From positions 12,834,223 to 12,898,000 of the forward strand of contig CM106586.1 in NCBI GenBank assembly GCA_048013815.1: a DNA stretch of 63,778 nt, given 5' to 3'. This DNA comes from Setoptus koraiensis (Eukaryota; Animalia; Arthropoda). The notes under the pieces were generated by a model, which had not been told where the DNA came from, made no database searches, and saw nothing but the letters and a program-made list of their open reading frames with translations. The translations under genes were made by a program, and so were the position numbers. Shown one piece after another: positions 47,501-60,184 of this stretch (the stretch's first letter is position 1; the number at the start of each line of letters is the position of its first letter).

Positions 47501-47603
47501 TGATTTGAGCTGGCATGAGCGAAAGTCGGCGAGTTAGTGACAAACTTTTGCATTACATAATATTATTATGTTAGTGGCGTTGAGTCTACGATGCGGAGAT
47601 AGC

Positions 47604-47634
<31 letters not shown>

Positions 47635-49581
47635 ACCGGACAGATAAACAGCGCAACAGTGGATGCGAGTGACTGGGCGACTTTAAGTAGTTTGCTCAGC
47701 GCCTGTCAAATCGATAAACTGACTGGCCTGCACCGATGACGCTCATTACAAGCACTCCATTCCGCAAACAACAACAACAACAACAACTGGCACTGATTAG
47801 CTGTCAAGCTGCAAGCTCACCTGTGCTGCCATTGCCTGCATGTTGCTGCTTTATTAACTGGCGCATGTGTCATCTAGTTACGACTGTGTGTTGCGTCATC
47901 GTGGCCGTTGCCGCTGCATTAGTAGCCATCATTAGCCGCTGTCGAGATAGAGCGAGCTCATTTGATGGCATTCATTCAATTGTGTTAATAGCGAGAGTGT
48001 CTCGGTTATTTTATTTTAATCTGCGCCGGTGCTTGTTGAGTGCGTCCTGTTGCGTCCAGTTTGCCAGTCAGTTTGCGGACAGCGTCTAGCGGGCGCCCTA
48101 TCAAACAATAATCCCAATACGGCAACAGTTAGTTCATGACAGTGTTCAGTTTGCAGCCAGTTTGCAACAACTCAGCCAGCAACAATTTAACAATTGTGTG
48201 TACTCACAATCGTCCACAATGAGCGACCATAATTGAAATCATAGCGTTGCGTGCCACAGCTCAATATGAGAGTTGCCCATTTCCTGCCCGACGCACCGGC
48301 CCAAGCAGCGACACACAACGACAAACGCTCCCAAATATAGAGCCAGATATAGAGAGACTCGTAGAGACAAATTCATCGACACAGTGAGAGTTTCCTGTCG
48401 AGCAGTGCATCGATTTCAATCAAAGCCACAACATGTGAGACAGATAATGCGAGAGCTGTCATAAAAGAAAACAGATTATTCATTATTGCATATCGCTAAC
48501 TGGCTCAACAAGTCCGCCGGCCCGACCAGTCAACCGGCCCGCGAGTCAACCGGCCGCAAGTCAACCGGCCCGACGAGTCAACTGGCCCGACAAATCCGCC
48601 GGCCCGACAAGCCAACTGGCCCGGTGAGCCAACTGGCCAGTGCAGGCCGCAGCAAGTCAGTTCAGTGGCAACAGCTCAAGCGGCCGAGTGGCAGAGATAG
48701 AAGCAAATAAATAGAGATGTAGCGCCAGTGAAAAAGAAAATGGATCAGTGTGCAAATTGATTATTTCTCTTATTGTTTGCCAGCGATCGACAATAGCAAC
48801 AAGTTGCAGTTAGCCGGCTATAAATAAGCGCACATGTCGGCATCATCGACAAATGATCAGTTGTATATATAGTTGTTGTAGTTAGTTGTGCACTGTCGTT
48901 GTTGTGCAAAAAAGCGCCTAGCTGCCATTCCATTTGCTGGCATGCAGGCAGCCAGCCAGCGAAAAGAAGCAAAATTCAAATTAATCACAGCGCACACAAC
49001 AAACAGTTACAATGAAGACAGCAAACTGTTTCTATTCATCCGATCACCGGCCACTGATCAATTGCGCTCCTGACCATTATGATACAATAACAACTGACCA
49101 GTCAAAACTTCTCTCAAACTCTCACAAGCCAACAACTGTTACATCAACATTCAATTGAATTCCAAGAATTCAGAGCGACCGTCGGCTGCCAATTAGCGCC
49201 ACTCCGTTATTAGGTGCGGTTGAATCGTCGTCGGCGACGTTGCTGACCACACCAGTCTCACTGGACCATGCCAACCAAAGCAGCCGTTCGGCCCGCCAGC
49301 CAGCCAGCCAGCCAACTAATCTGAATAGTCTGAGAGAACTCTTTTCCACCTAACATCACCACCATCTCAACTTCATATCTGGCAAGTGTCATGATGAACT
49401 GACCGCAAATCATGTGCAAATCAGCAACAACTAAAATCACTCTCAGATGCATAAAATGACAACGCGCCTCGCACTTTACAATCAGCAACAATTAATCACC
49501 GTCACAGAGCACAATCGTCAATAGTGTCAACAATATAATAATGTCATCGCTTATGCAAAAAATTATCATTCATCCAATAGA

Positions 49582-52500
49582 ATGTTATTACAAATAATGG
49601 TGTGCCTAATTATAATGTCATCACCAGGTGAATATATAGCAACAGCAACAAACAAACTGAGATGCCTGTCACACAATTGTCACTATTGTTAATTGTTTTT
49701 ATCCAAATTAACTCAAATTTATCCACAAACCAAACATGCAACACACAGGAATGCCTCTGTCCACTGACCACTGTTACACTGATATTGGCTGCTTTCCGAT
49801 AACGCCAGAATTTTATCATCCACGCTACAGGCCCATTAATGTGAGGCCGTGGCACAGAAGCAGAATAAAGACAACATTCACCCTGTTCAACAACGACCAA
49901 ACAGAGGGTTACGTAATGCGACCATGGAATCACTTGAGTACGTAATCTACTCATACGTGAAAAAATAAATAACGCACTACATCTTCATAGAATTAATTAA
50001 TTAATTCTTCTACTTTCTCCGACCGTCTCTCTCTCTCTCTGCCATTGAAGACTTGCAAGCCTCAAGATTCAATCCACTGCTCGAAACCAAGCTCATAATA
50101 CCCGGCTGGCTTGACAACATGAGTGAGTAATATAGAACACACTAGAAACGGCACTATGTTGTGTCATTTTGATGTAATACAAGATCTTCATTCACGAAGT
50201 TGTTGATATTCACTCTTTTGCACTATGCAACTGGCATATTTTGAACAAATCACGCAAACATATTTTTCTAGTCGATCCAACAGTTGCCTCTGATGAAGAA
50301 GTGTGTGTGTGAGAGTATATATCGACTAGTTTTTCAGATATTCGATTTAGACCTAATCTTCTAGAGTTTATGATTTCAACCAGACCACCATCTCTCAGAG
50401 AAGCTAGAAGCTAGGCCTACCGCATTACATTTTCGCTCAATGAATCCAAGGCCAGCTTTCATCATTTCTGAAGAAATCTTCTGTTGGTCTCGAACTCGAG
50501 CCCCAACTTGATGACGAAGAAGGTGTTGAACCTTCTCTTGAGTCTCTTGCGCTAGACGTCGAGCCACAACACGGCGCCCATAAGCGACTCTTTGAGTGAA
50601 AAATATTCTGAAATCTGGATGAACTAGATTGAATTTCATGAGGCAATTAGAAACTGACTCAATCATCGTGATCAATTCTCGATGACAGAATGTATCGTGT
50701 TGATCGTGTCGGATGGAGCAAAGTCTATATCTGTGACAACGTTAAGCTCTGTAGGTTACGGTCGGAAGGAACCTTTTTCGAAATTGTTGTAAATGAAGTT
50801 AGTTATTTGAGGACATTTGCCAATGAGTTGGCAAAATAAAAGAATGGCTAGAATTGGTTTCTGATTGCACCGACATAATGCTCCCGGTTTTTGGTCGATT
50901 GGTGGCCATTCTGAACAACATTGGAGCTGAGATTTTCATTCGACGAATTGCTGGATTTGGCTAGATGCTATGTTTGTCGACCAATCTGACTCAGAGAGTG
51001 TCCGTTGCTATTGTGAATTAGCATTTTATAGAACGAGCTCCACGCTTGTCCATTGTCCATCTCTAGAGCACGCGCCACTGTGTAATCAATGAGGTCAATA
51101 AACAACTACTTATGATTCATTTATTTTCTACATTTATTATCAACAAATTGGAAATAATCTATTCAATCATGTGACGTGTATCAGAAAGGACGCTATGGGT
51201 CAAGAAGCTCAAGGACTCATTTTTGTGGCTGTGGGAACCGGTCAATATTGTGGTCGTCGAATGGGTCAATTTTACCCCCTACACAATCGCCACCGCCAAC
51301 ACTAGGGTGGTGGGTGCCGAGATAGCAAACATGCTAAAGTTTATCGAGGAAGTTTACGAGTATAAGCGTGCCTACTATCATCTGATCGGACATAGTTTAG
51401 GCGCCCACATAGCCGCCTATTGCGGTAAGTGACGCTGTTGAGCCGTGTATGCGCAAAGAAATACCCTCGCTATCTTTGTTATTATTATTATTTCTAATTT
51501 TAATTATTATCGCGACTACAATAACAATTGCTCTCCATTGCAGGGGACAGATTGCCGGGATTAGGCCGCATTACCGCACTGGATCCGGCGCGGCCCTTCT
51601 TTCAGCACATGCCAAAGAGTATTCGCTTGGACAGAGGCGACGCAAAATTTGTTGATGCCATACATAGCGATTTTACGCCAGAGAATGCCTTTTTGTTATT
51701 TATTACGTCATTCGGCATGAGCACGCCAGTGGGACATGTTGATTTTTTTCCAAACAGACCGTCACTGTTACAACCTGGCTGCTTTCGGGATGCCATGTGG
51801 TCTGTGCCGAGGGGCTTTAATCAGGCCATAAGGCACCAGTCTATGGTGGTCGGTTTCATGGAGGCAATCAGATATTTGGTTGCCTGTGATCATCAGCGTG
51901 CTCACGAATGGTTCATAGAGTCAGTGACCAATCAGGAGTGCATGTTTGTCGGAGTGAGATGTTCCGATTACGACGGAGTGGTCAACGGACGGTGCAGTTG
52001 CGACGACTCAAAAGCCGCCTGTGCCATAATGGGAATACACTCGGATCAAATGTATCTCCACGGCGTGCATAACGACATGCCAGATTATTTGAGAAAATTG
52101 CCATCATCATCTTCGTCACTCGAGTTCAATTCGGCCCCCCATTTGCAGCAGCAGCAGCAGCAAAAGCACTTTTCGGCAGCACTTCACCACCAGTTTCGGC
52201 AGCAACAACAACAGTATCACTATCACAAATCAAAAAGCAACGGTCATTTCGGGCTGGTTGCAACCTCACAAGACGATCATGGTCTAGTGCTGGACTTTGA
52301 CGTGCCTGACAGCGACGACCAGACAAGACGAACATTTGTCGGCAACGGCAAGCTAATGAGCAAGCCGCAACAAGACAAGTGGAACACTATCACGAACAGC
52401 CATCATCACTATGATCGATCATCATCATCATTTTTGAGCAACAATCACGCCAATGTTAGAAATACACAACCGAAACTATTGTCAGAAATCAATCAAGAGA

Positions 52501-53552
52501 TTGAGTCGTGGTACGAAAACAACAATCGCTGGTTCCTCATGACAAACAACAAACGTTTATATTGTGTTCATCAGTATCAAGTGCTAGTGTTTGTTGGCTA
52601 TTTGCCAAATTTCGAATACGTCAAAGCCAATTTAATTATGTCTATTATTGGCAGCGAGGGTCGCCTATTAAATCAGCGCTTCTCGCCCAGAGGCGGCAGA
52701 TTAACATCGGATTCGTTGCAACCGTTTTATGTTGTCTTTGAGAGTGCCTTCTCGTTGGGCACCATACAATCGGTGACGCTTGCATGGGAACCCAAGAATC
52801 GCCAAGACGCCTCGGTCAAGGCCAAAATAGAGATGACAAATCCGACATTGTTGCAACTACAAAGTCATCTAGACACAATAGTGCCCGCTATAAATGTCCA
52901 TATGCCCTACAAATCAAACAAAATTAACGTTCAGTCAACGAGACAACAACATTTGCCAGACAAAAATCACTACATAGGCAACGCGTACAAAAGAATAGAT
53001 TCAGCGCCGGATATACGATCAACAGTCAGTGGAGGGCATCATCATTCGTCTATTCGGAGTGCCGGTGGCTGCAAATCTAATCAGATTGATCATGACAACA
53101 ATTTAGAGGATAGTTTTTGCGAAAGATCAACCGGATCTCACCAACGGCACGCCAACTTACCTAGTCCAACGTCGCCAATTCCATTGCAGCGTCCTCTCGT
53201 CAACCGGCTCGACCAATTTGAGCTCGACGACACATTTGAACTGATTCATCCAGAGTCGGTTCTGCTGCCCGCAGTGCCGACACCGCCAATGGTGCAACAT
53301 CAGTACCAGCAACAAAACAACAACGCAATGCAAACAATTGACTTATTGTTGGCCACTTTTTCCAGGCATCGCGATGACAGAATATTTTTGGTGATAAACC
53401 AAATAAGAATCACACCCGTACAGGCCTACTACGGTAAAAATTATAATGTTAAAATCAGCCGGACCTTTTGTCCGCCACACAAAAATTACCTGATACCTCA
53501 CAAGCAGACTGTTCAATTCAGATCGAGCTCTGGCAGTTGTTTCGCGTCCTGA
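49582..53552 (+). CDS. Secreted pancreatic-lipase-family triacylglycerol lipase with interrupted PLAT-like C-terminus, 851 aa; exons 49582-49627, 49749-49937, 50051-50122, 51185-51424, 51544-53552
   Basis: CYTDIGCF N-terminus, GHSLGAHIA nucleophile elbow, ITALDPARP, VDAIHSD and CDHQRA. All four GT-AG introns are phase 1 and the CDS totals 2556 nt. Confidence 0.9.
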
Positions 53553-54062
53553 TCAACAAGGCAGAATCTCTTTCTCTGTCAACGTCAACTCAAAGCAACC
53601 GAAAACCTCGAGATTGATAGCAATTGGCATAGGAAGTTGCTAGAAAACTCAATCCTATTCCATCTACCTCAACAAGCCAAATATCTGCATGCCAACAACG
53701 AGACAATGCATTTGCTCATATATTATTAGTTGAACAATCGCAACTTGATCAATTAAAAGCAATTGTTAATCAAATTCAAGACGTCTCAAGGAGGCTGGCA
53801 ACCTGACCGGGCAATCTCCTTCAAAAGATTACATTGTAGTGACTATTCAGAGCAACTTGCATTTCTTCTCTTTCGCCGATCGTGAATCTTTTGTATAATT
53901 TGTATAATTTTGGCCGTCTTGCGTGGGCTAGCGCGAGGCTTCCGATACGCAGCAAATAAAGTCCGATAAAGAGATCGCGTGCAATGTGATGCAATATCGT
54001 CTTAAACTAGGCCATCATGTTAGTTATCCTCTAGGTTATTCTTATTTAAAAAATGATACGAT

Positions 54063-55039
54063 ATGTCCAATTTAATAAATTTAAGCGTTTTCGGCACACA
54101 ATGTTTTGTGTTGATTTGTTTGCTCTTATACACAATATATATTTCAATAAGTGACAAGGTCACCAATAATGTTGCAGACAAGCCTGTCAAAGAATTGAGT
54201 ATTAATTTGACAAAAATATTGCAATATGCACGCAGAGATGACAATCTTCAATCAAGCAATTCAACAATAGCTGATGGCAATGTCACAGCAGCAACAACAA
54301 ACAATCAAACGACCAATGGATCCAAACAAATGGACCCGATGATTGGAAAATCCACAGTCGTAGATTTCGAAGACGATGACAGCTTTGTGATTGTTGAACT
54401 CAGTCCAGATTCTATTGCCTGGCTAGAAATGGCCGATTTAGGCGATGGCTCATTGATGGACGATGATAATTACATGTCACTCAGTTCGCAAAGTATTGAT
54501 GCCAGCAACGAGAATATCAATGAGACTTACATCCTGAGATTATTGTTGATTTCGGTTATATTAGCTGCCCAAATCATTGCTCTGATAGGTTGTTGGTCTA
54601 ACAGACGTCTTCTGATTTCGATTCACCACACGATTATCTCATTTAGTACAATATTGATGGTGCTGCTACAATTGTTCATTGTTGCACGTAAGTATCTGTG
54701 GCAAGCATTTGTTTTTTGTTCTGTTCCTCTAATTGTCGCAACTGATCTTATTTGCAATTTTGTATCACTCATACTAATCATGAACAATGTGATTTCGAAA
54801 CAATCCCACCAGAACATCGAGAGGAGAATTCCGGCCTAAATGGCCACAATTATCCAAATCAATACTCGGAAATAATGAAAAATCTGCTACTTCCTACCGT
54901 CAATGCGATGATTTCGATAAAGATGGCCATTGTTTTAATAATTTGCAGTAGTTATGCGCATGGTTTGCACTTGATGTGCCGAATGAAAAGAAGAAAGAGC
55001 TACCGTTCAGCAAGCTCGAATTTTTCCGATTTGGCTTAA
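54063..55039 (+). CDS. Orphan four-TM membrane protein, about 283 aa; exons 54063-54687 and 54813-55039
   Basis: Donor C|GTAAGT at 54688 and acceptor CAG| at 54812 are both phase 1 and join two ORF-track frames. Four hydrophobic segments with a large loop after TM1. Confidence 0.65.
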
Positions 55040-55048
55040 TCGATTGAG

Positions 55049-55325
55049 CTACCTCAATGTATTTGACCACGTGGGCCTGTAGCGTGGATGATAAAATTCT
55101 GGCGTTATCGGAAAGCAGCCAATATCAGTGTAACAGTGGTCAGTGGACAGAGGCATTCCTGTGTGTTGCATGTTTGGTTTGTGAATGAATTTGAGTTAAT
55201 TTGGATAAAAACAATTAACAATAGTGACAATTGTGTGACAGGCATCTCAGTTTGTTTGTTGTTGTAGCTATATATTCACCTGGTGATGACATTATAATTA
55301 GGCACACCATTATTTGTAATAACAT
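55049..55325 (-). pseudogene. Truncated lipase duplicate able to encode a 51-aa secreted peptide (exons 55325-55280 and 55158-55049)
   Basis: ATG and both splice sites intact; translation MLLQIMVCLIIMSSPGMPLSTDHCYTDIGCFPITPEFYHPRYRPTWSNTLR*. Confidence 0.6.
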
Positions 55326-55945
55326 TCTATTGGATGAATGATAATTTTTTGCATAAGCGATGACATTATTATATTGTTGACACTATTGACGATTGTGCTC
55401 TGTGACGCTGATTAATTATGTTGCTGATTGTAAAGTGCGAGGCGCGTTGTCATTTTATGCATTTGAGAATTGAGCATTTTAGCTTGTTGCTGGTATGCAC
55501 ATGATTTGCGGTCAGTTCATTATGACACTTGCCAGATATGTAGTTGAGATAGTGGTGATGTTAGGTGGAAAAGAGTTCTCTCCGGCTATTCAGATTAGTT
55601 GGCTGACTGGCGGGCCGAACGGCTGATTCGGTTGGCATGGTCCAGTGAGACTGGTGTGGTCAGCAACGTCGCCGACGACGATACAACCGCACCTAATAAC
55701 GGAGTGGCGCTAATTGGCAGCCGACGGTCGCTCTGAATTCTTGGAATTCAATTGAATGTTGATGTAACAGTTGTTGGCTTGTGAGAGTTTGAGAGAAGTT
55801 TTGACTGGTCAGTTGTTATTGTATCATAATGGTCAGGAGCGCAATTGATCAGTGGCCGGTGATCGGATGAATAGAAACAGTTTGCTGTCTTCATTGTAAC
55901 TGTTTGTTGTTGCGCCGTGATTAATTTGAATTTTACTTTTTTTCG
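55072..55945 (-). repeat. Inverted duplicate of 48960-49835 (lipase upstream region, exon 1, intron 1 and 5' part of exon 2)
   Basis: Reverse complement aligns by eye. Exon 1 and the exon 2 part are identical; intron 1 has 4 substitutions in 121 nt; the upstream part has substitutions and small indels. Confidence 0.95.
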
Positions 55946-56078
55946 ATGGCCGAAGGGGATGGTGCGCAGTGCGCATGCGCACCAAATAAGTCAACCGTCG
56001 TTGTGCGAATGGGGCCGTTATAACAAAATCAGACGCACGTACCGAACTTCAACTGACAAGTGAGTGAGCGCGCTGCTT

Positions 56079-56578
56079 NNNNNNNNNNNNNNNNNNNNNN
56101 NNNNNNNNNNNNNNNNNNNNNNNNNNNNNNNNNNNNNNNNNNNNNNNNNNNNNNNNNNNNNNNNNNNNNNNNNNNNNNNNNNNNNNNNNNNNNNNNNNNN
56201 NNNNNNNNNNNNNNNNNNNNNNNNNNNNNNNNNNNNNNNNNNNNNNNNNNNNNNNNNNNNNNNNNNNNNNNNNNNNNNNNNNNNNNNNNNNNNNNNNNNN
56301 NNNNNNNNNNNNNNNNNNNNNNNNNNNNNNNNNNNNNNNNNNNNNNNNNNNNNNNNNNNNNNNNNNNNNNNNNNNNNNNNNNNNNNNNNNNNNNNNNNNN
56401 NNNNNNNNNNNNNNNNNNNNNNNNNNNNNNNNNNNNNNNNNNNNNNNNNNNNNNNNNNNNNNNNNNNNNNNNNNNNNNNNNNNNNNNNNNNNNNNNNNNN
56501 NNNNNNNNNNNNNNNNNNNNNNNNNNNNNNNNNNNNNNNNNNNNNNNNNNNNNNNNNNNNNNNNNNNNNNNNNNNNNN
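56079..56578. other. Assembly gap (500 N, probably a placeholder size)
   Basis: Run of exactly 500 N. Confidence 0.99.
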
Positions 56579-58477
56579 GAAGATAACTTCAAGTCACCAG
56601 CAGAGTTGCCTTATTTTGAAGGTGACTTTTGGCCTAATGTCATCGAAAAATCTCTCAAAGAACTTGAAATAGAGAAACTCACTCAACCTTCGGCTATAAC
56701 TGCTGGCACAGAGAATAGTCAAGACGTTGAGATGGCAACTGTCAATGATGAAGAGATAATCGAAACTAATGATTGCGAAGATGGGATTAATTCCACCAAT
56801 GATAAATCCTCAATCGATCAGACTAATCAAACCAAAGAGTGTGATGGCACTAACATGAAACAACAGAAAAAGTCAAGTGCCAATAAAAAGTCCAGTAAAA
56901 AACAGAACCAACGAAAAAATAATGTGCACAATTCCAGAAACAAGGGCAGTGCTAATCAACACCAAGCATTATCTAATCCTGCCAGAGCTTGGGAGGCAGA
57001 ACTGACCAACAAAATATATGCCACCATGGAAAAACACAGGGAGGTATTCTTTGTCATAAGATTACATTCGCTATCAGCTGCACAGAATTTGAAGCCGATT
57101 CAGGACCCTGATGGAACTATTAGCTGTGATCTAATGGACGGAAGAGACGCATTCCTAACCATGGCTAGAGAAAAGCATTATGAATTTTCATCTTTGCGAC
57201 GTGCTAAATTCTCTAGCCTGTGCATGCTCTATGAACTCCATAATAGTTCGAATGATAAGTTTGTCTACACGTGTAATGTTTGCAAGAAACAATTGGTGGA
57301 GTCTCGTTATCATTGTGCAACATGTGATGATTTTGATCTCTGTGGAGCTTGTTACTCACGCGAGAGCCATCAGCATAGAATGGAAAGACTGGAATTTGGC
57401 GATCTTGTTGGTGCAGTACCAGGCGAAGAACGTGGAATGGGAGGATCTTTGGGTGGCTTATCCGGTTTGGGATCGAATGATGGAGAAGGAGGATCGAACC
57501 CGTCTAACTTTGGATCAACAGCGGCATCCCCTGGAGATTCTAGAAGACAATCAATCCAAAGATGTGTCAGCGGGCTTGTGCATGCATGCAATTGTCGTGA
57601 CGCTAATTGTCGGCAGCCAGTTTGCACAAAGATGAAAAAGATTGTTCAGCATTCAAGAATATGTTCCTTGCAAAAAAGAGCACCCAATCAGTGTACTATT
57701 TGCAAACAACTTTTGGCTTTATGTTGTTTCCATGCCAAGACTTGTGATGAGACTAAATGCACGGTACCCTTCTGTGCTGCCATCAAGAATAGGTTGAAGC
57801 AACAACAAATACTTCAAAGAATGCAACAACAACAACTAATGCAACGACGTATAGCATCTATGACTAATGCCGGGTCTACATCCACTGCTGCAATCACTGC
57901 TGCTGCAGCAGCTGCTCATGCTACCCCACCGAGTGTTCCAGCGCCTCAACCCAAGTTACCATCAATAAGTAGCCAGCAATCAGCCCTGAACTCATCAGTA
58001 ATGTCCCCCGGTCCAAAGATCTCTGTGCCTATCACTCTTGGAGGTTTGATAGCCAATAGTCCAGCCATGGGTAAACCAGAATCAAATATGATGAACCATT
58101 CATCCATACCGAACAGTGATAGCCCTTCCCCAATACAAGCAACTCCGAATGGAGGAATACATTATATAAAACAATTGAACTCCGTAGGATCGCCACAACA
58201 GCAAATCGTTAACCAGAATATACAAAGTCTCATACCCAAAGTTCCGACACCTGTTGCCGCTTTAACTCCCCAGCAGCTACAGCCACAACATTCCCCTCAC
58301 TATACTATATCAAGCAGTACAATAACTGTCACTCCGGTTGCCCCTCATTTCACAATCAATCAACAACAACAGCAACAACAGCAACAACAGCAGCAACAAC
58401 AACAGCAACAACAACAGCAACAACAGCAACAACAGCAGCAACAACAACAGCAACAACAGCAGCAGCAGCAACAACAA

Positions 58478-58551
<74 letters not shown>

Positions 58552-60184
58552 GCAACAACAACAGCAGCAGCAACAACAGCAACAACAACAGCAGCAGCAA
58601 CAGCAGCAGCAAAAACAACAACAACAACAACAACAGCAGCAGCAACAACAACAACAACAGCAACAACAGCAGCAGCAACAACAACAACAACAACAACAGC
58701 AGCAACAACAACAGCAACAACAACAACAGCAACAACAACAACAGCAGCAGCAACAACAGCAACAACAACAACAGCAGCAGCAACAACAACAACAGCAACA
58801 ACAACAACAACAACAGCAACAGCAACAACAACAACAGCAACAGCATCAGCAACAACAACTCCAACAGCACCAACAAAAGCAGCAGCATCAACAGCACCAG
58901 CATCATCAACATCACCCGCAACAGCAACATCACCATCAGCCCCAACAGCAGCAGCCTAACATGACATTAAATCACACTCGCCCCAGTGTCATGCAACAAC
59001 AGCAGCACCCTATAACCATATCTCAGCCCAATTCATCTCAACAAGTCCATCAACAGATTGCACCCATGAGACCATCCCTCAATCAACATCAACCCAGACA
59101 GATTATGCCCAGGAATCAGCAACCAAGTCTGCAAGGTAACCAACTTGGCACTATGCAGCATACCTCACAACAATCTGGTCTGTTGCAAGGTCAACCCTCT
59201 CAACCACCACAACCATCTCAATCTCCAATGCACAATCACATGCAACAAACGAGAGTTCAGCAATCCCAGCAGACAATGCTTACACAACAACCACAGCAAA
59301 CTCAACAACCCCAGCAACAGCAAACTACTCAACAATGGTATCCTCAAACTAACAATCAAAACCAACAAGTATTTCAGCATCAACAAGTCCAAAACCACAC
59401 ATCTCCATCTAATCCAATGTTAGGTCCTCAGGTGCAATCTCGACCAGCGACCAATGTTCATTATATAAGCCAGCCTAATATATCCCAGGGCTCCAGCAAC
59501 GGGGGTGCTTCAATCCATCAATATATTGGTCCCCAAAATCAAGTGCCTCAACAGCAGATTGCTCCTCACAGGGGCATGCAACCAACATCAATCTCTCAGC
59601 CACAGAATGCCATCAATGCAGGACAACAAATCACTCACCAGTTACGGCAACCATCAATAATGGCGCAACAACCTATGGGTCAACCGAGGATGATGGTCTT
59701 AAGACAATCTAATCACCAACAAACTATTCAACAAGTTCCACAAATTGCCCCTGCTCAACAAATGCATCATACCATGGGTAATCAAATGCAGCAAGGACCG
59801 GCTCAACAACAGAATGTTAACCAATCACAATGGTTTTCTGGCCCACCAAATAGTGTTGTTCATCCTAATATAACTCAGCAACAGCAGGGCTTCATACCTC
59901 AACAACAACAAACTCAACTAAATCAGCCACACATGGTTGTACCCAGAATGCCCAATAATAGGTTGCCAGGTGGAGGGGTTCGAGGCAATATGATAAGAAC
60001 AGCTATGCCTAGACAGATGATGGGCATGACGAGATTCGCAGGCCCTCACCAGATGGGCCAACCTAGCACAGATCAAGACATGCTTTTGTTTCAAAACCAA
60101 GGAGACTTCCGAAACCACCCCCAGACACATCAACAAGAAATGACTCCACAGGATCAACTGAGCCAATTTGTTGAAAAGTTATAG
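56579..60184 (+). CDS. CBP: CREB-binding protein/p300 (nejire), 3' part: end of HAT, ZZ, TAZ2, Q-rich tail; 5' part lost in the gap
   Basis: ELPYFEGDFWPNVIE, DLMDGRDAFLTMAREKHYEFSSLRRAKFS, ZZ finger YTCNVC...CDDFDLC, TAZ2 HACNCRDANC, terminal DQLSQFVEKL. Confidence 0.97.
58361..58843 (+). repeat. Mixed CAA/CAG repeat encoding Q84-K-Q76 within CBP
   Basis: Counted from frame: Gln 58361-58612, AAA 58613-58615, Gln 58616-58843. Confidence 0.95.

Follow-up and report, generated by a model that had tools for sequence, protein, structure and literature searches.

In mouse oocytes, antisense siRNAs are derived from pseudogenes. Hairpin-RNA (hpRNA) loci in Drosophila are described as sources of endo-siRNAs directed against their genes of origin (PMC10317233, PMC10292708). 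Endo-siRNAs are also described for cis-NATs, where convergent mRNAs overlap at their 3' ends (PMC11840564).

We analyzed a window of 63,778 nt from the genome of Setoptus koraiensis (contig CM106586.1), in which the 5' end of a lipase gene recurs in inverted orientation behind a neighboring gene for a four-TM membrane protein (4-TM gene). Like hpRNA loci, this arrangement duplicates a piece of a protein-coding gene in inverted orientation, with near-perfect complementarity to its source (0 differences in 133 exonic nt), and Dicer and Argonaute genes are present. However, an hpRNA keeps both arms in a single dedicated transcript, joined by a short loop, whereas the arms here are 5.2 kb apart and do not sit in one short-loop transcript. 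As in cis-NATs, the copied lipase promoter faces the 4-TM gene, and the transcripts from the two could overlap. In contrast to cis-NATs, the overlap is suggested here by missing poly(A) signals alone, and a third gene comes in, as the duplex would also match the lipase in trans. A gene-fragment copy in antisense could pair with its parent mRNA as in mouse oocytes, although that case comes from another clade and the fragment here is a 5' end with its intron, not a processed pseudogene. The locus also resembles dead-end partial gene duplicates, being a fragment of a few hundred bp with promoter and first exons, reversed and a few kb from its parent. Its truncated reading, patchy identity, and identical coding blocks recall such duplicates when homogenized by gene conversion. 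It is distinct from other dead-end duplicates in lying directly in the 3' flank of a neighbor with no poly(A) signal ahead of the copy, beside a scaffold gap.

The lipase 5' end recurs inverted and truncated

The features of the repeat, its parent gene and the 4-TM gene are as follows (window coordinates).

48955-49835, + strand: left arm, the parental segment, with lipase upstream DNA (627 bp up to the ATG), exon 1, intron 1, and the initial 87 nt of exon 2
49582-53552, + strand: pancreatic-type lipase gene (PF00151), exons 49582-49627, 49749-49939, ~50050-50121, ~51184-51426, and 51543-53552
50165-50955, unstranded: repeat-derived insert in the long lipase intron, related to DNA at C2:3.155 Mb
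54063-55039, + strand: four-TM orphan membrane-protein gene, exons 54063-54687 and 54813-55039, intron of 125 nt
55040-55071, + strand: 4-TM 3' flank before the junction, 32 nt without a poly(A) signal
55049-55325, - strand: 51-codon truncated reading, exon 1' 55325-55280, intron 55279-55159, exon 2' 55158-55049 including the stop
55072-55950, - strand: right arm, the lipase 5' end copied in inverted orientation and cut short, with the same content as the left arm

The inverted repeat was first seen as five collinear pieces, and its length rules out chance. The recurrence reported in the initial annotation was recovered with slightly wider ends, window positions 48955-49835 matching 55072-55950 in inverted orientation. 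Left (48955-49835) and right (55950-55072) arms aligned over 888 columns with 95.6-95.7% identity. They differ by 27 substitutions and 4 indels over 872 aligned bases, a substitution divergence of 3.1%. Both arms have discrete, sharp ends, and the DNA flanking each is unrelated. Copy-number searches, which covered the two chromosomes, returned exactly two copies of the ~880-bp segment. Between the arms lie 5236 nt, occupied by the body of the lipase gene and the separate 4-TM gene and containing three canonical poly(A) signals. No known RNA families were found in either arm or between the arms. The 264 kb around the locus contain many other local repeats, 0.3-1.2 kb in size.

The lipase gene matched PF00151 with 62.7 and 134.7 bits (cut-off 27) in protein searches that took exons singly. 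The G-x-S-x-G nucleophile elbow reads GHSLG, in the exon at 51223-51429, and the protein carries a long C-terminal extension without a Pfam domain. About 100 nt of the intron insert are related to a repeated array on C1 (22.19-22.22 Mb). The lipase body is single copy on the two chromosomes. The left arm runs on into the remainder of exon 2, like the lipase L026 of a related mite, found on a metagenome contig. Because the parent gene and the related mite's lipase are both continuous across the breakpoint, sequence comparison identifies the left copy as the parent and the right arm as the derived, truncated copy. The L026 locus has the lipase in different surroundings and no inverted copy; because its neighbors differ, it cannot validate the adjacency of the 4-TM and CBP genes.

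The 4-TM gene is genuine and conserved, with one homologue (P0040) at 58% identity in which the donor site is conserved. Its stop ends at 55039 and the right arm starts at 55072, leaving 32 nt between them and bearing out the breakpoint reported close behind the stop. The initial annotation had also seen no AATAAA in the copy on that strand. This was confirmed, and neither AATAAA nor ATTAAA occurs anywhere on the + strand between 54900 and the gap. The neighboring genes have canonical signals within 200 nt (lipase +200, CBP +167).

Divergence between the arms and the open reading in the copy

The exonic parts had been described as identical, and we found 0 differences in the 46 and 87 nt concerned, with all 27 substitutions in the other 739 aligned bases. 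The differences are clustered, with a 227-nt non-coding run free of any (P = 0.003 under uniformity). Identity is patchy, with long identical blocks beside blocks diverged by 8-10%. Once this clustering is kept, exons free of differences have P ~0.04-0.11. The initial annotation had offered constraint or conversion as explanations. Constraint is weakened, since exon identity is not significant with the clustering kept, while conversion gains, since clustering is as expected of conversion tracts. At the sequence level, the patchy divergence fits gene conversion with the parent. Short-read polishing may possibly have blurred the differences between the arms somewhat.

The copy was also said to retain upstream DNA, the ATG, and both splice sites, and these were found in place, with the 51-codon open frame confirmed piecewise. 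Its splice sites are identical to those of the parent lipase. Exon 1' gives 15 residues (55325-55281), followed by a split codon, 35 residues from 55156, and a stop at 55051-55049. The frame thus stops 7 codons past the breakpoint, and those 7 residues are antisense of the 4-TM 3' flank. We regard the micropeptide as a predicted open reading and nothing further. It is scarcely credible that a new gene has arisen here whose secreted product of 51 residues joins the lipase signal peptide to 28 further residues from the lipase and 7 novel ones. The intact ATG, splice sites, and frame and the hydrophobic N-terminus would suit such a gene, but the product comprises just the first strand of the lipase fold, in truncated form, with a C-terminus read from the antisense of a 3' flank. 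Moreover, it has no homologue or exact match on record (exact look-ups of six ORFs at this locus gave no hit, even for the genuine 4-TM ORF), and selection leaves no sign.

Origin of the copy and the scaffold gap

With a probability of roughly 0.6, the copy is real and arose as an inverted partial duplication that is young in evolutionary terms and a dead end. The two copies have discrete ends in unrelated flanks, and one lies in an intact, orthologue-like gene while the other is truncated. In this duplication, a segment running from 627 bp of promoter-proximal DNA through exon 1 and intron 1 to the 87th nt of exon 2 would have been copied and inserted in reverse 5.2 kb downstream, 32 nt past the 4-TM stop and probably in the 4-TM 3' UTR. 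Break repair or replication template switching is the likely route, because there are no target-site duplications, transposon ends, or junction microhomology. At the junction, no convincing microhomology was found, and CCACGTGG there is a chance palindrome. Capture by a transposon was rejected, as target-site duplications and terminal repeats are absent, the tail beyond the copy is single copy, and the segment occurs in two copies only. Since copying, the arms would have diverged by ~3%, with gene conversion from the parent fitting the patchiness. The copy is presumably a neutral or mildly harmful by-product.

The right arm is followed by a short tail and a gap.

55951-56078, unstranded: unique tail between copy and gap, 128 bp, single copy
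56079-56578, unstranded: scaffold gap of the 3D-DNA type, 500 N, the sole gap in the window
56579-60184, + strand: 3' half of the CBP/p300 gene, with the HAT domain end, ZZ, TAZ2, and a giant polyQ, beginning mid-exon at the gap edge

At 56079-56578 the reference assembly lacks sequence: the gap hides several kb, including at least the missing CBP 5' half. According to the accessible text of the genome paper, DNA came from a pool of >100,000 wild mites with a genome-wide heterozygosity of 1.13%. Unamplified HMW DNA was sequenced as PacBio CLR and assembled with Flye 2.6, purge_dups, and 3D-DNA, without RNA-seq. The reads, given there as 30 kb, easily span an 880-bp repeat, an observation on the side of a duplication. 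Public reads are available under SRR32458739-41, with the run for Setoptus koraiensis among them.

The main competitor of a genuine duplication is an assembly artefact, or a structural variant in part of the pooled population, in which 55072-56078 was joined via a chimeric or minority path and the right arm is an allele or unplaced paralogue instead of a copy in cis. Just 128 bp separate the copy from a contig end, and the gap there swallows the CBP 5' half. All of the gaps sampled (3/3) have a local repeat within 2 kb, which links contig ends and repeats in this assembly, whatever the cause. The pooled, heterozygous sample and the assembly pipeline would favor such a join, and identical exons with diverged non-coding DNA are the pattern expected of two alleles of a working gene. 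However, homology ends sharply at 48955/55950 and does not continue to the contig end. The tail shows no homology to the DNA upstream of the lipase, scoring as shuffled sequences do. Fold-back chimeras, a simple inversion allele, and a haplotype overhang are disfavored because all of them predict homology continuing into the tail. In addition, the divergence between the arms, 3.1% in substitutions with four indels besides, is roughly threefold the heterozygosity of the genome as a whole. The two chromosomes carry no second lipase body, and the junction is 1 kb inside the contig. The initial annotation had itself cautioned that a mis-joined haplotype might be involved. Its point about proximity to the gap holds, while the mis-joined haplotype is weakened, not removed, by the non-homologous tail. 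Overall, we judge an artefact or variant unlikely, with an appreciable minority chance.

Several specific sources of a false repeat were considered separately. Fold-back reads from a missed adapter were rejected, as such palindromes lack a spacer and the arms here are 5.2 kb apart. A chimera from amplification (MDA) is also unlikely, as the accessible methods text gives HMW extraction from pooled mites and mentions no amplification. A second full-length lipase paralogue that might own the right arm was not found on the two chromosomes.

Possible antisense transcription and RNA silencing

It is structurally plausible that the 4-TM mRNA carries lipase antisense, because a transcript passing the 4-TM stop would meet no canonical poly(A) signal before the gap. 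In the opposite direction, the minus strand offers its first ATTAAA at 54939, within the last exon of the 4-TM gene. If the 4-TM mRNA enters the copy, or if the copied promoter fires toward the 4-TM gene, lipase-sequence dsRNA could form as a side effect of the duplication. On a bolder reading, inverted duplicates of gene fragments, this copy among many, would feed endogenous RNAi in this genome. Here, convergence of the 4-TM 3' UTR and the copied promoter would yield dsRNA and then siRNAs that couple lipase output to expression of its neighbor, a scenario to which we assign little credence.

A functional antisense or endo-siRNA module would go further than this side effect. In such a module, the 4-TM mRNA would carry lipase exon 1-2 antisense and/or the copied promoter would drive a convergent minus-strand transcript, and the duplex, once diced, would modulate the lipase, the 4-TM gene, or both. 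Besides the missing poly(A) signal and the minus-strand ATTAAA, this proposal draws on perfect complementarity over 87 and 46 nt and a further 82 nt of leader, on the copy having kept its splice sites and the upstream DNA next to the gene, and on the conservation of the 4-TM gene. The genome also encodes at least 3 Dicer-like and ~10 Argonaute/Piwi genes. However, the identity of the exons is not significant with clustering kept, no RdRP gene was detected in the genome (in a search without a positive control), and the related mite's locus has no such copy. We consider a functional module improbable by a wide margin. As it stands, the copy is a structural curiosity with at most a putative role as an antisense regulator.

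If the structure is real, it provides a dated case of local inverted duplication of a gene fragment in an extremely compact arthropod genome (the streamlined gall-mite genome has ~6,000 genes). The likely 3' UTR of one gene would then also contain a perfect antisense of another gene, an arrangement presumed to be the starting point of new RNA-silencing loci. The lipase transcript itself had been suggested to read through into the copy and fold back, but this is unlikely, as a transcript running past the lipase stop would meet three canonical poly(A) signals before reaching the copy.

Extent and origin of the inverted copy

A repeat search of the window returned five collinear inverted pieces. 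Alignment with MAFFT and BLAST merged them into a single 888-column match between 48955-49835 (left arm) and 55950-55072 (right arm), with 95.6-95.7% identity. The initial annotation had paired 48960-49835 with 55072-55945; this pairing was confirmed and slightly extended. The arms are separated by a 5.2-kb spacer. Across 872 aligned bases they show 27 substitutions and 4 indel events, and one of the indels alters the length of a (CCAG)n tract by 8 nt. A whole-assembly search found exactly two copies of the segment. We read this arrangement as a young, dead-end inverted partial duplicate, a real cis duplication that is an inert by-product (probability about 0.6). The features concerned are as follows.

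48955-49835, duplicated segment (left arm): exon 1 (46 nt) and intron 1 (121 nt), preceded by 627 bp of DNA upstream of the ATG and followed by the initial 87 nt of exon 2
49582-53552, + strand, pancreatic-type lipase gene (PF00151, 62.7 and 134.7 bits; GHSLG elbow)
54063-54687 and 54813-55039, + strand, gene for a four-TM (4-TM) protein (one homologue, 58% identity)
From the gap at 56079-56578 to 60184, 3' half of a canonical CBP/p300 gene, beginning mid-exon at the gap edge (HAT positions 214-347, ZZ, TAZ2, giant polyQ)

In L026, a related mite lipase found on a metagenome contig, the reading continues across the breakpoint, which identifies the left copy as the parent and the right one as a truncated derivative. 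The right arm begins at 55072, 32 nt past the 4-TM stop codon (which ends at 55039), and stops 128 bp short of the 500-N gap, the only one in the window; both the breakpoint just behind this stop and a gap about 130 bp away had been described initially. The 4-TM protein matches no Pfam family, and none of its Atlas neighbours was convincing. Its homologue has splice-donor codons in common with it, so we consider the gene real. At its distal end (48955) the duplicated segment borders on a short (CCAG)-like tract, and the DNA upstream of the lipase contains a 17-nt tandem repeat together with microsatellites of the (AGCC)n/(CCAG)n type (47593-47641, 48498-48640 and 49290-49314).

Real duplication or assembly artefact

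The S. koraiensis (Eriophyoidea) assembly is reported as two chromosomes with a scaffold N50 of 24.53 Mb after 3D-DNA scaffolding; the methods describe PacBio CLR reads (30-kb library), Flye 2.6, NextPolish, purge_dups, 3D-DNA and manual Juicebox review, with unamplified DNA from >100,000 pooled wild mites and 1.13% k-mer heterozygosity (PMC11920263). We searched its two scaffolds, C1 and C2 (48.76 Mb in total; 24,533,333 bp for the scaffold of the window), in which each gap seen was 500 N. The KIX domain, the second TAZ domain (TAZ1), the bromodomain and the N-terminal HAT part of CBP were not found on the two chromosomes, and C1 carries the only other HAT_KAT11 gene, a divergent paralogue. 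Given these missing domains and the mid-exon start, the gap must hide at least several kb. At this point half of an essential gene is therefore absent from the reference; it lies either within the gap or on a scaffold that was left unplaced. The C-terminal region of CBP (~58300-59100) carries an extraordinarily long, near-pure polyglutamine stretch, several hundred residues in length.

An artefact or polymorphic variant is rather unlikely. It would fit a copy that stops 128 bp from the edge of a contig, next to a gap that lost half a gene, a sample drawn from a large pool of wild mites, and the local repeats within 2 kb of all three gaps in the 264 kb examined (in which three of five local repeat clusters were near gaps). 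Against it, the tail between the right arm and the gap (55951-56078) is single copy and unrelated to lipase upstream DNA: against the 5 kb preceding the lipase, and against the rest of the window, it aligned no better than shuffled sequence. A search of the two chromosomes also found no second lipase body of which the right arm might form part. Lipase-upstream homology would run past 48955 up to the contig end in a fold-back chimera, in an alternate-haplotype overhang and in a plain inversion allele that was read in reverse; its absence from the tail speaks against all three in their simple forms. A missed-adapter palindrome would have no spacer. An amplification chimera is unlikely because the published methods mention no amplification step (PMC11920263). 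The 880-bp repeat would be easily spanned by the 30-kb read library, which favours a real copy. The initial caveat of a mis-joined alternate haplotype is weakened by the unrelated tail, though an artefact or chimeric path keeps a low probability. Overall, a genuine duplication in cis, whether polymorphic or fixed, is probable, and one with some function improbable.

Other contig ends on C2 also lie beside local repeats. A 747-bp direct repeat (98.9% identity) at L011:2787-3533 and L013:353-1099, two C2 stretches (C2:12,950,787-12,951,533 and 12,968,353-12,969,099, 16.8 kb apart), straddles the next 500-N gap (C2:12,966,074-12,966,573). A cluster of ~1-kb repeats in both orientations (88-96% identity; C2:13,010,920-13,022,758, stretches L017-L018) stops ~1 kb short of another gap, at C2:13,023,736.

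Exon identity and transcription potential of the copy

The arms show no differences in their 133 exonic bases (P = 0.006 if differences were uniform), and a non-coding run of 227 nt (48996-49222) is equally clean (P = 0.003 under uniformity). Exon 1 falls inside a 141-nt difference-free run that is mostly non-coding. Retaining the clustering gives the exon identity P = 0.11 when tested by circular shifts, and 26 of 628 when tested with sliding windows of matching geometry. Exon identity is no evidence for constraint on the copy. It had initially been taken to suggest constraint or conversion; the patchwork of clean blocks beside ~8% blocks fits gene-conversion tracts between the copies, and recombining alleles would equally fit.

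As first described, the right arm retains the ATG, both splice sites and a reading of 51 codons (15 + 1 + 35, exons read piece by piece). Lipase and copy exons were handled one at a time. The last seven codons are antisense of the 4-TM 3' flank, and a micropeptide gene is highly improbable.

No AATAAA, as had been noted for the copy, and no ATTAAA occurs on the + strand from the 4-TM stop to the gap; for the lipase, in contrast, three canonical poly(A) signals lie within 522 nt, and for CBP one lies at +167. Should the structure be genuine, the 4-TM 3' UTR was probably interrupted by the insertion, and the mRNA would carry at least part of lipase exon 2 in antisense unless a weak signal (GATAAA, 55090) is used. 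From the copied promoter, a minus-strand transcript would cross the junction and reach its first ATTAAA at 54939, within the 4-TM last exon, giving a convergent overlap. The proposed fold-back of lipase read-through is unlikely because the three lipase signals intervene. The S. koraiensis gene models come from ab initio and homology prediction, and the paper's text describes no RNA-seq or transcriptome (PMC11920263).

Whole-genome searches of this streamlined ~48-Mb genome gave no RdRP match (PF05183; a search run without a positive control), at least three Dicer-like long open frames (1740-2141 aa; C1:16.29 Mb, C2:23.45 Mb and C2:6.39 Mb) and about ten Argonaute/Piwi genes (Piwi-domain matches at 10 sites). 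Judged from sequence, the antisense and dsRNA features of the locus would amount to capacity only, and a functional antisense module is very unlikely.

Features of the parent lipase

The relatives of the lipase are unnamed Logan proteins (about 70% identity); named matches are mostly from arachnids (35-43%). Its C-terminal extension (52100-53552, ~490 residues) matched no Pfam domain in a profile search, PLAT included. Portions of it share 42-53% identity with the related mite lipase L026. Homologues measure 770-1058 aa, and the extension seems to be a conserved C-terminal region specific to mites. The unusually long lipase intron (~1.06 kb) is mostly a repeat (50165-50955) also present at C2:3.155 Mb (79-87% identity), of which ~100 nt (50470-50571) match >25 closely spaced copies at 22.19-22.22 Mb on C1, most of them ~172 bp apart.
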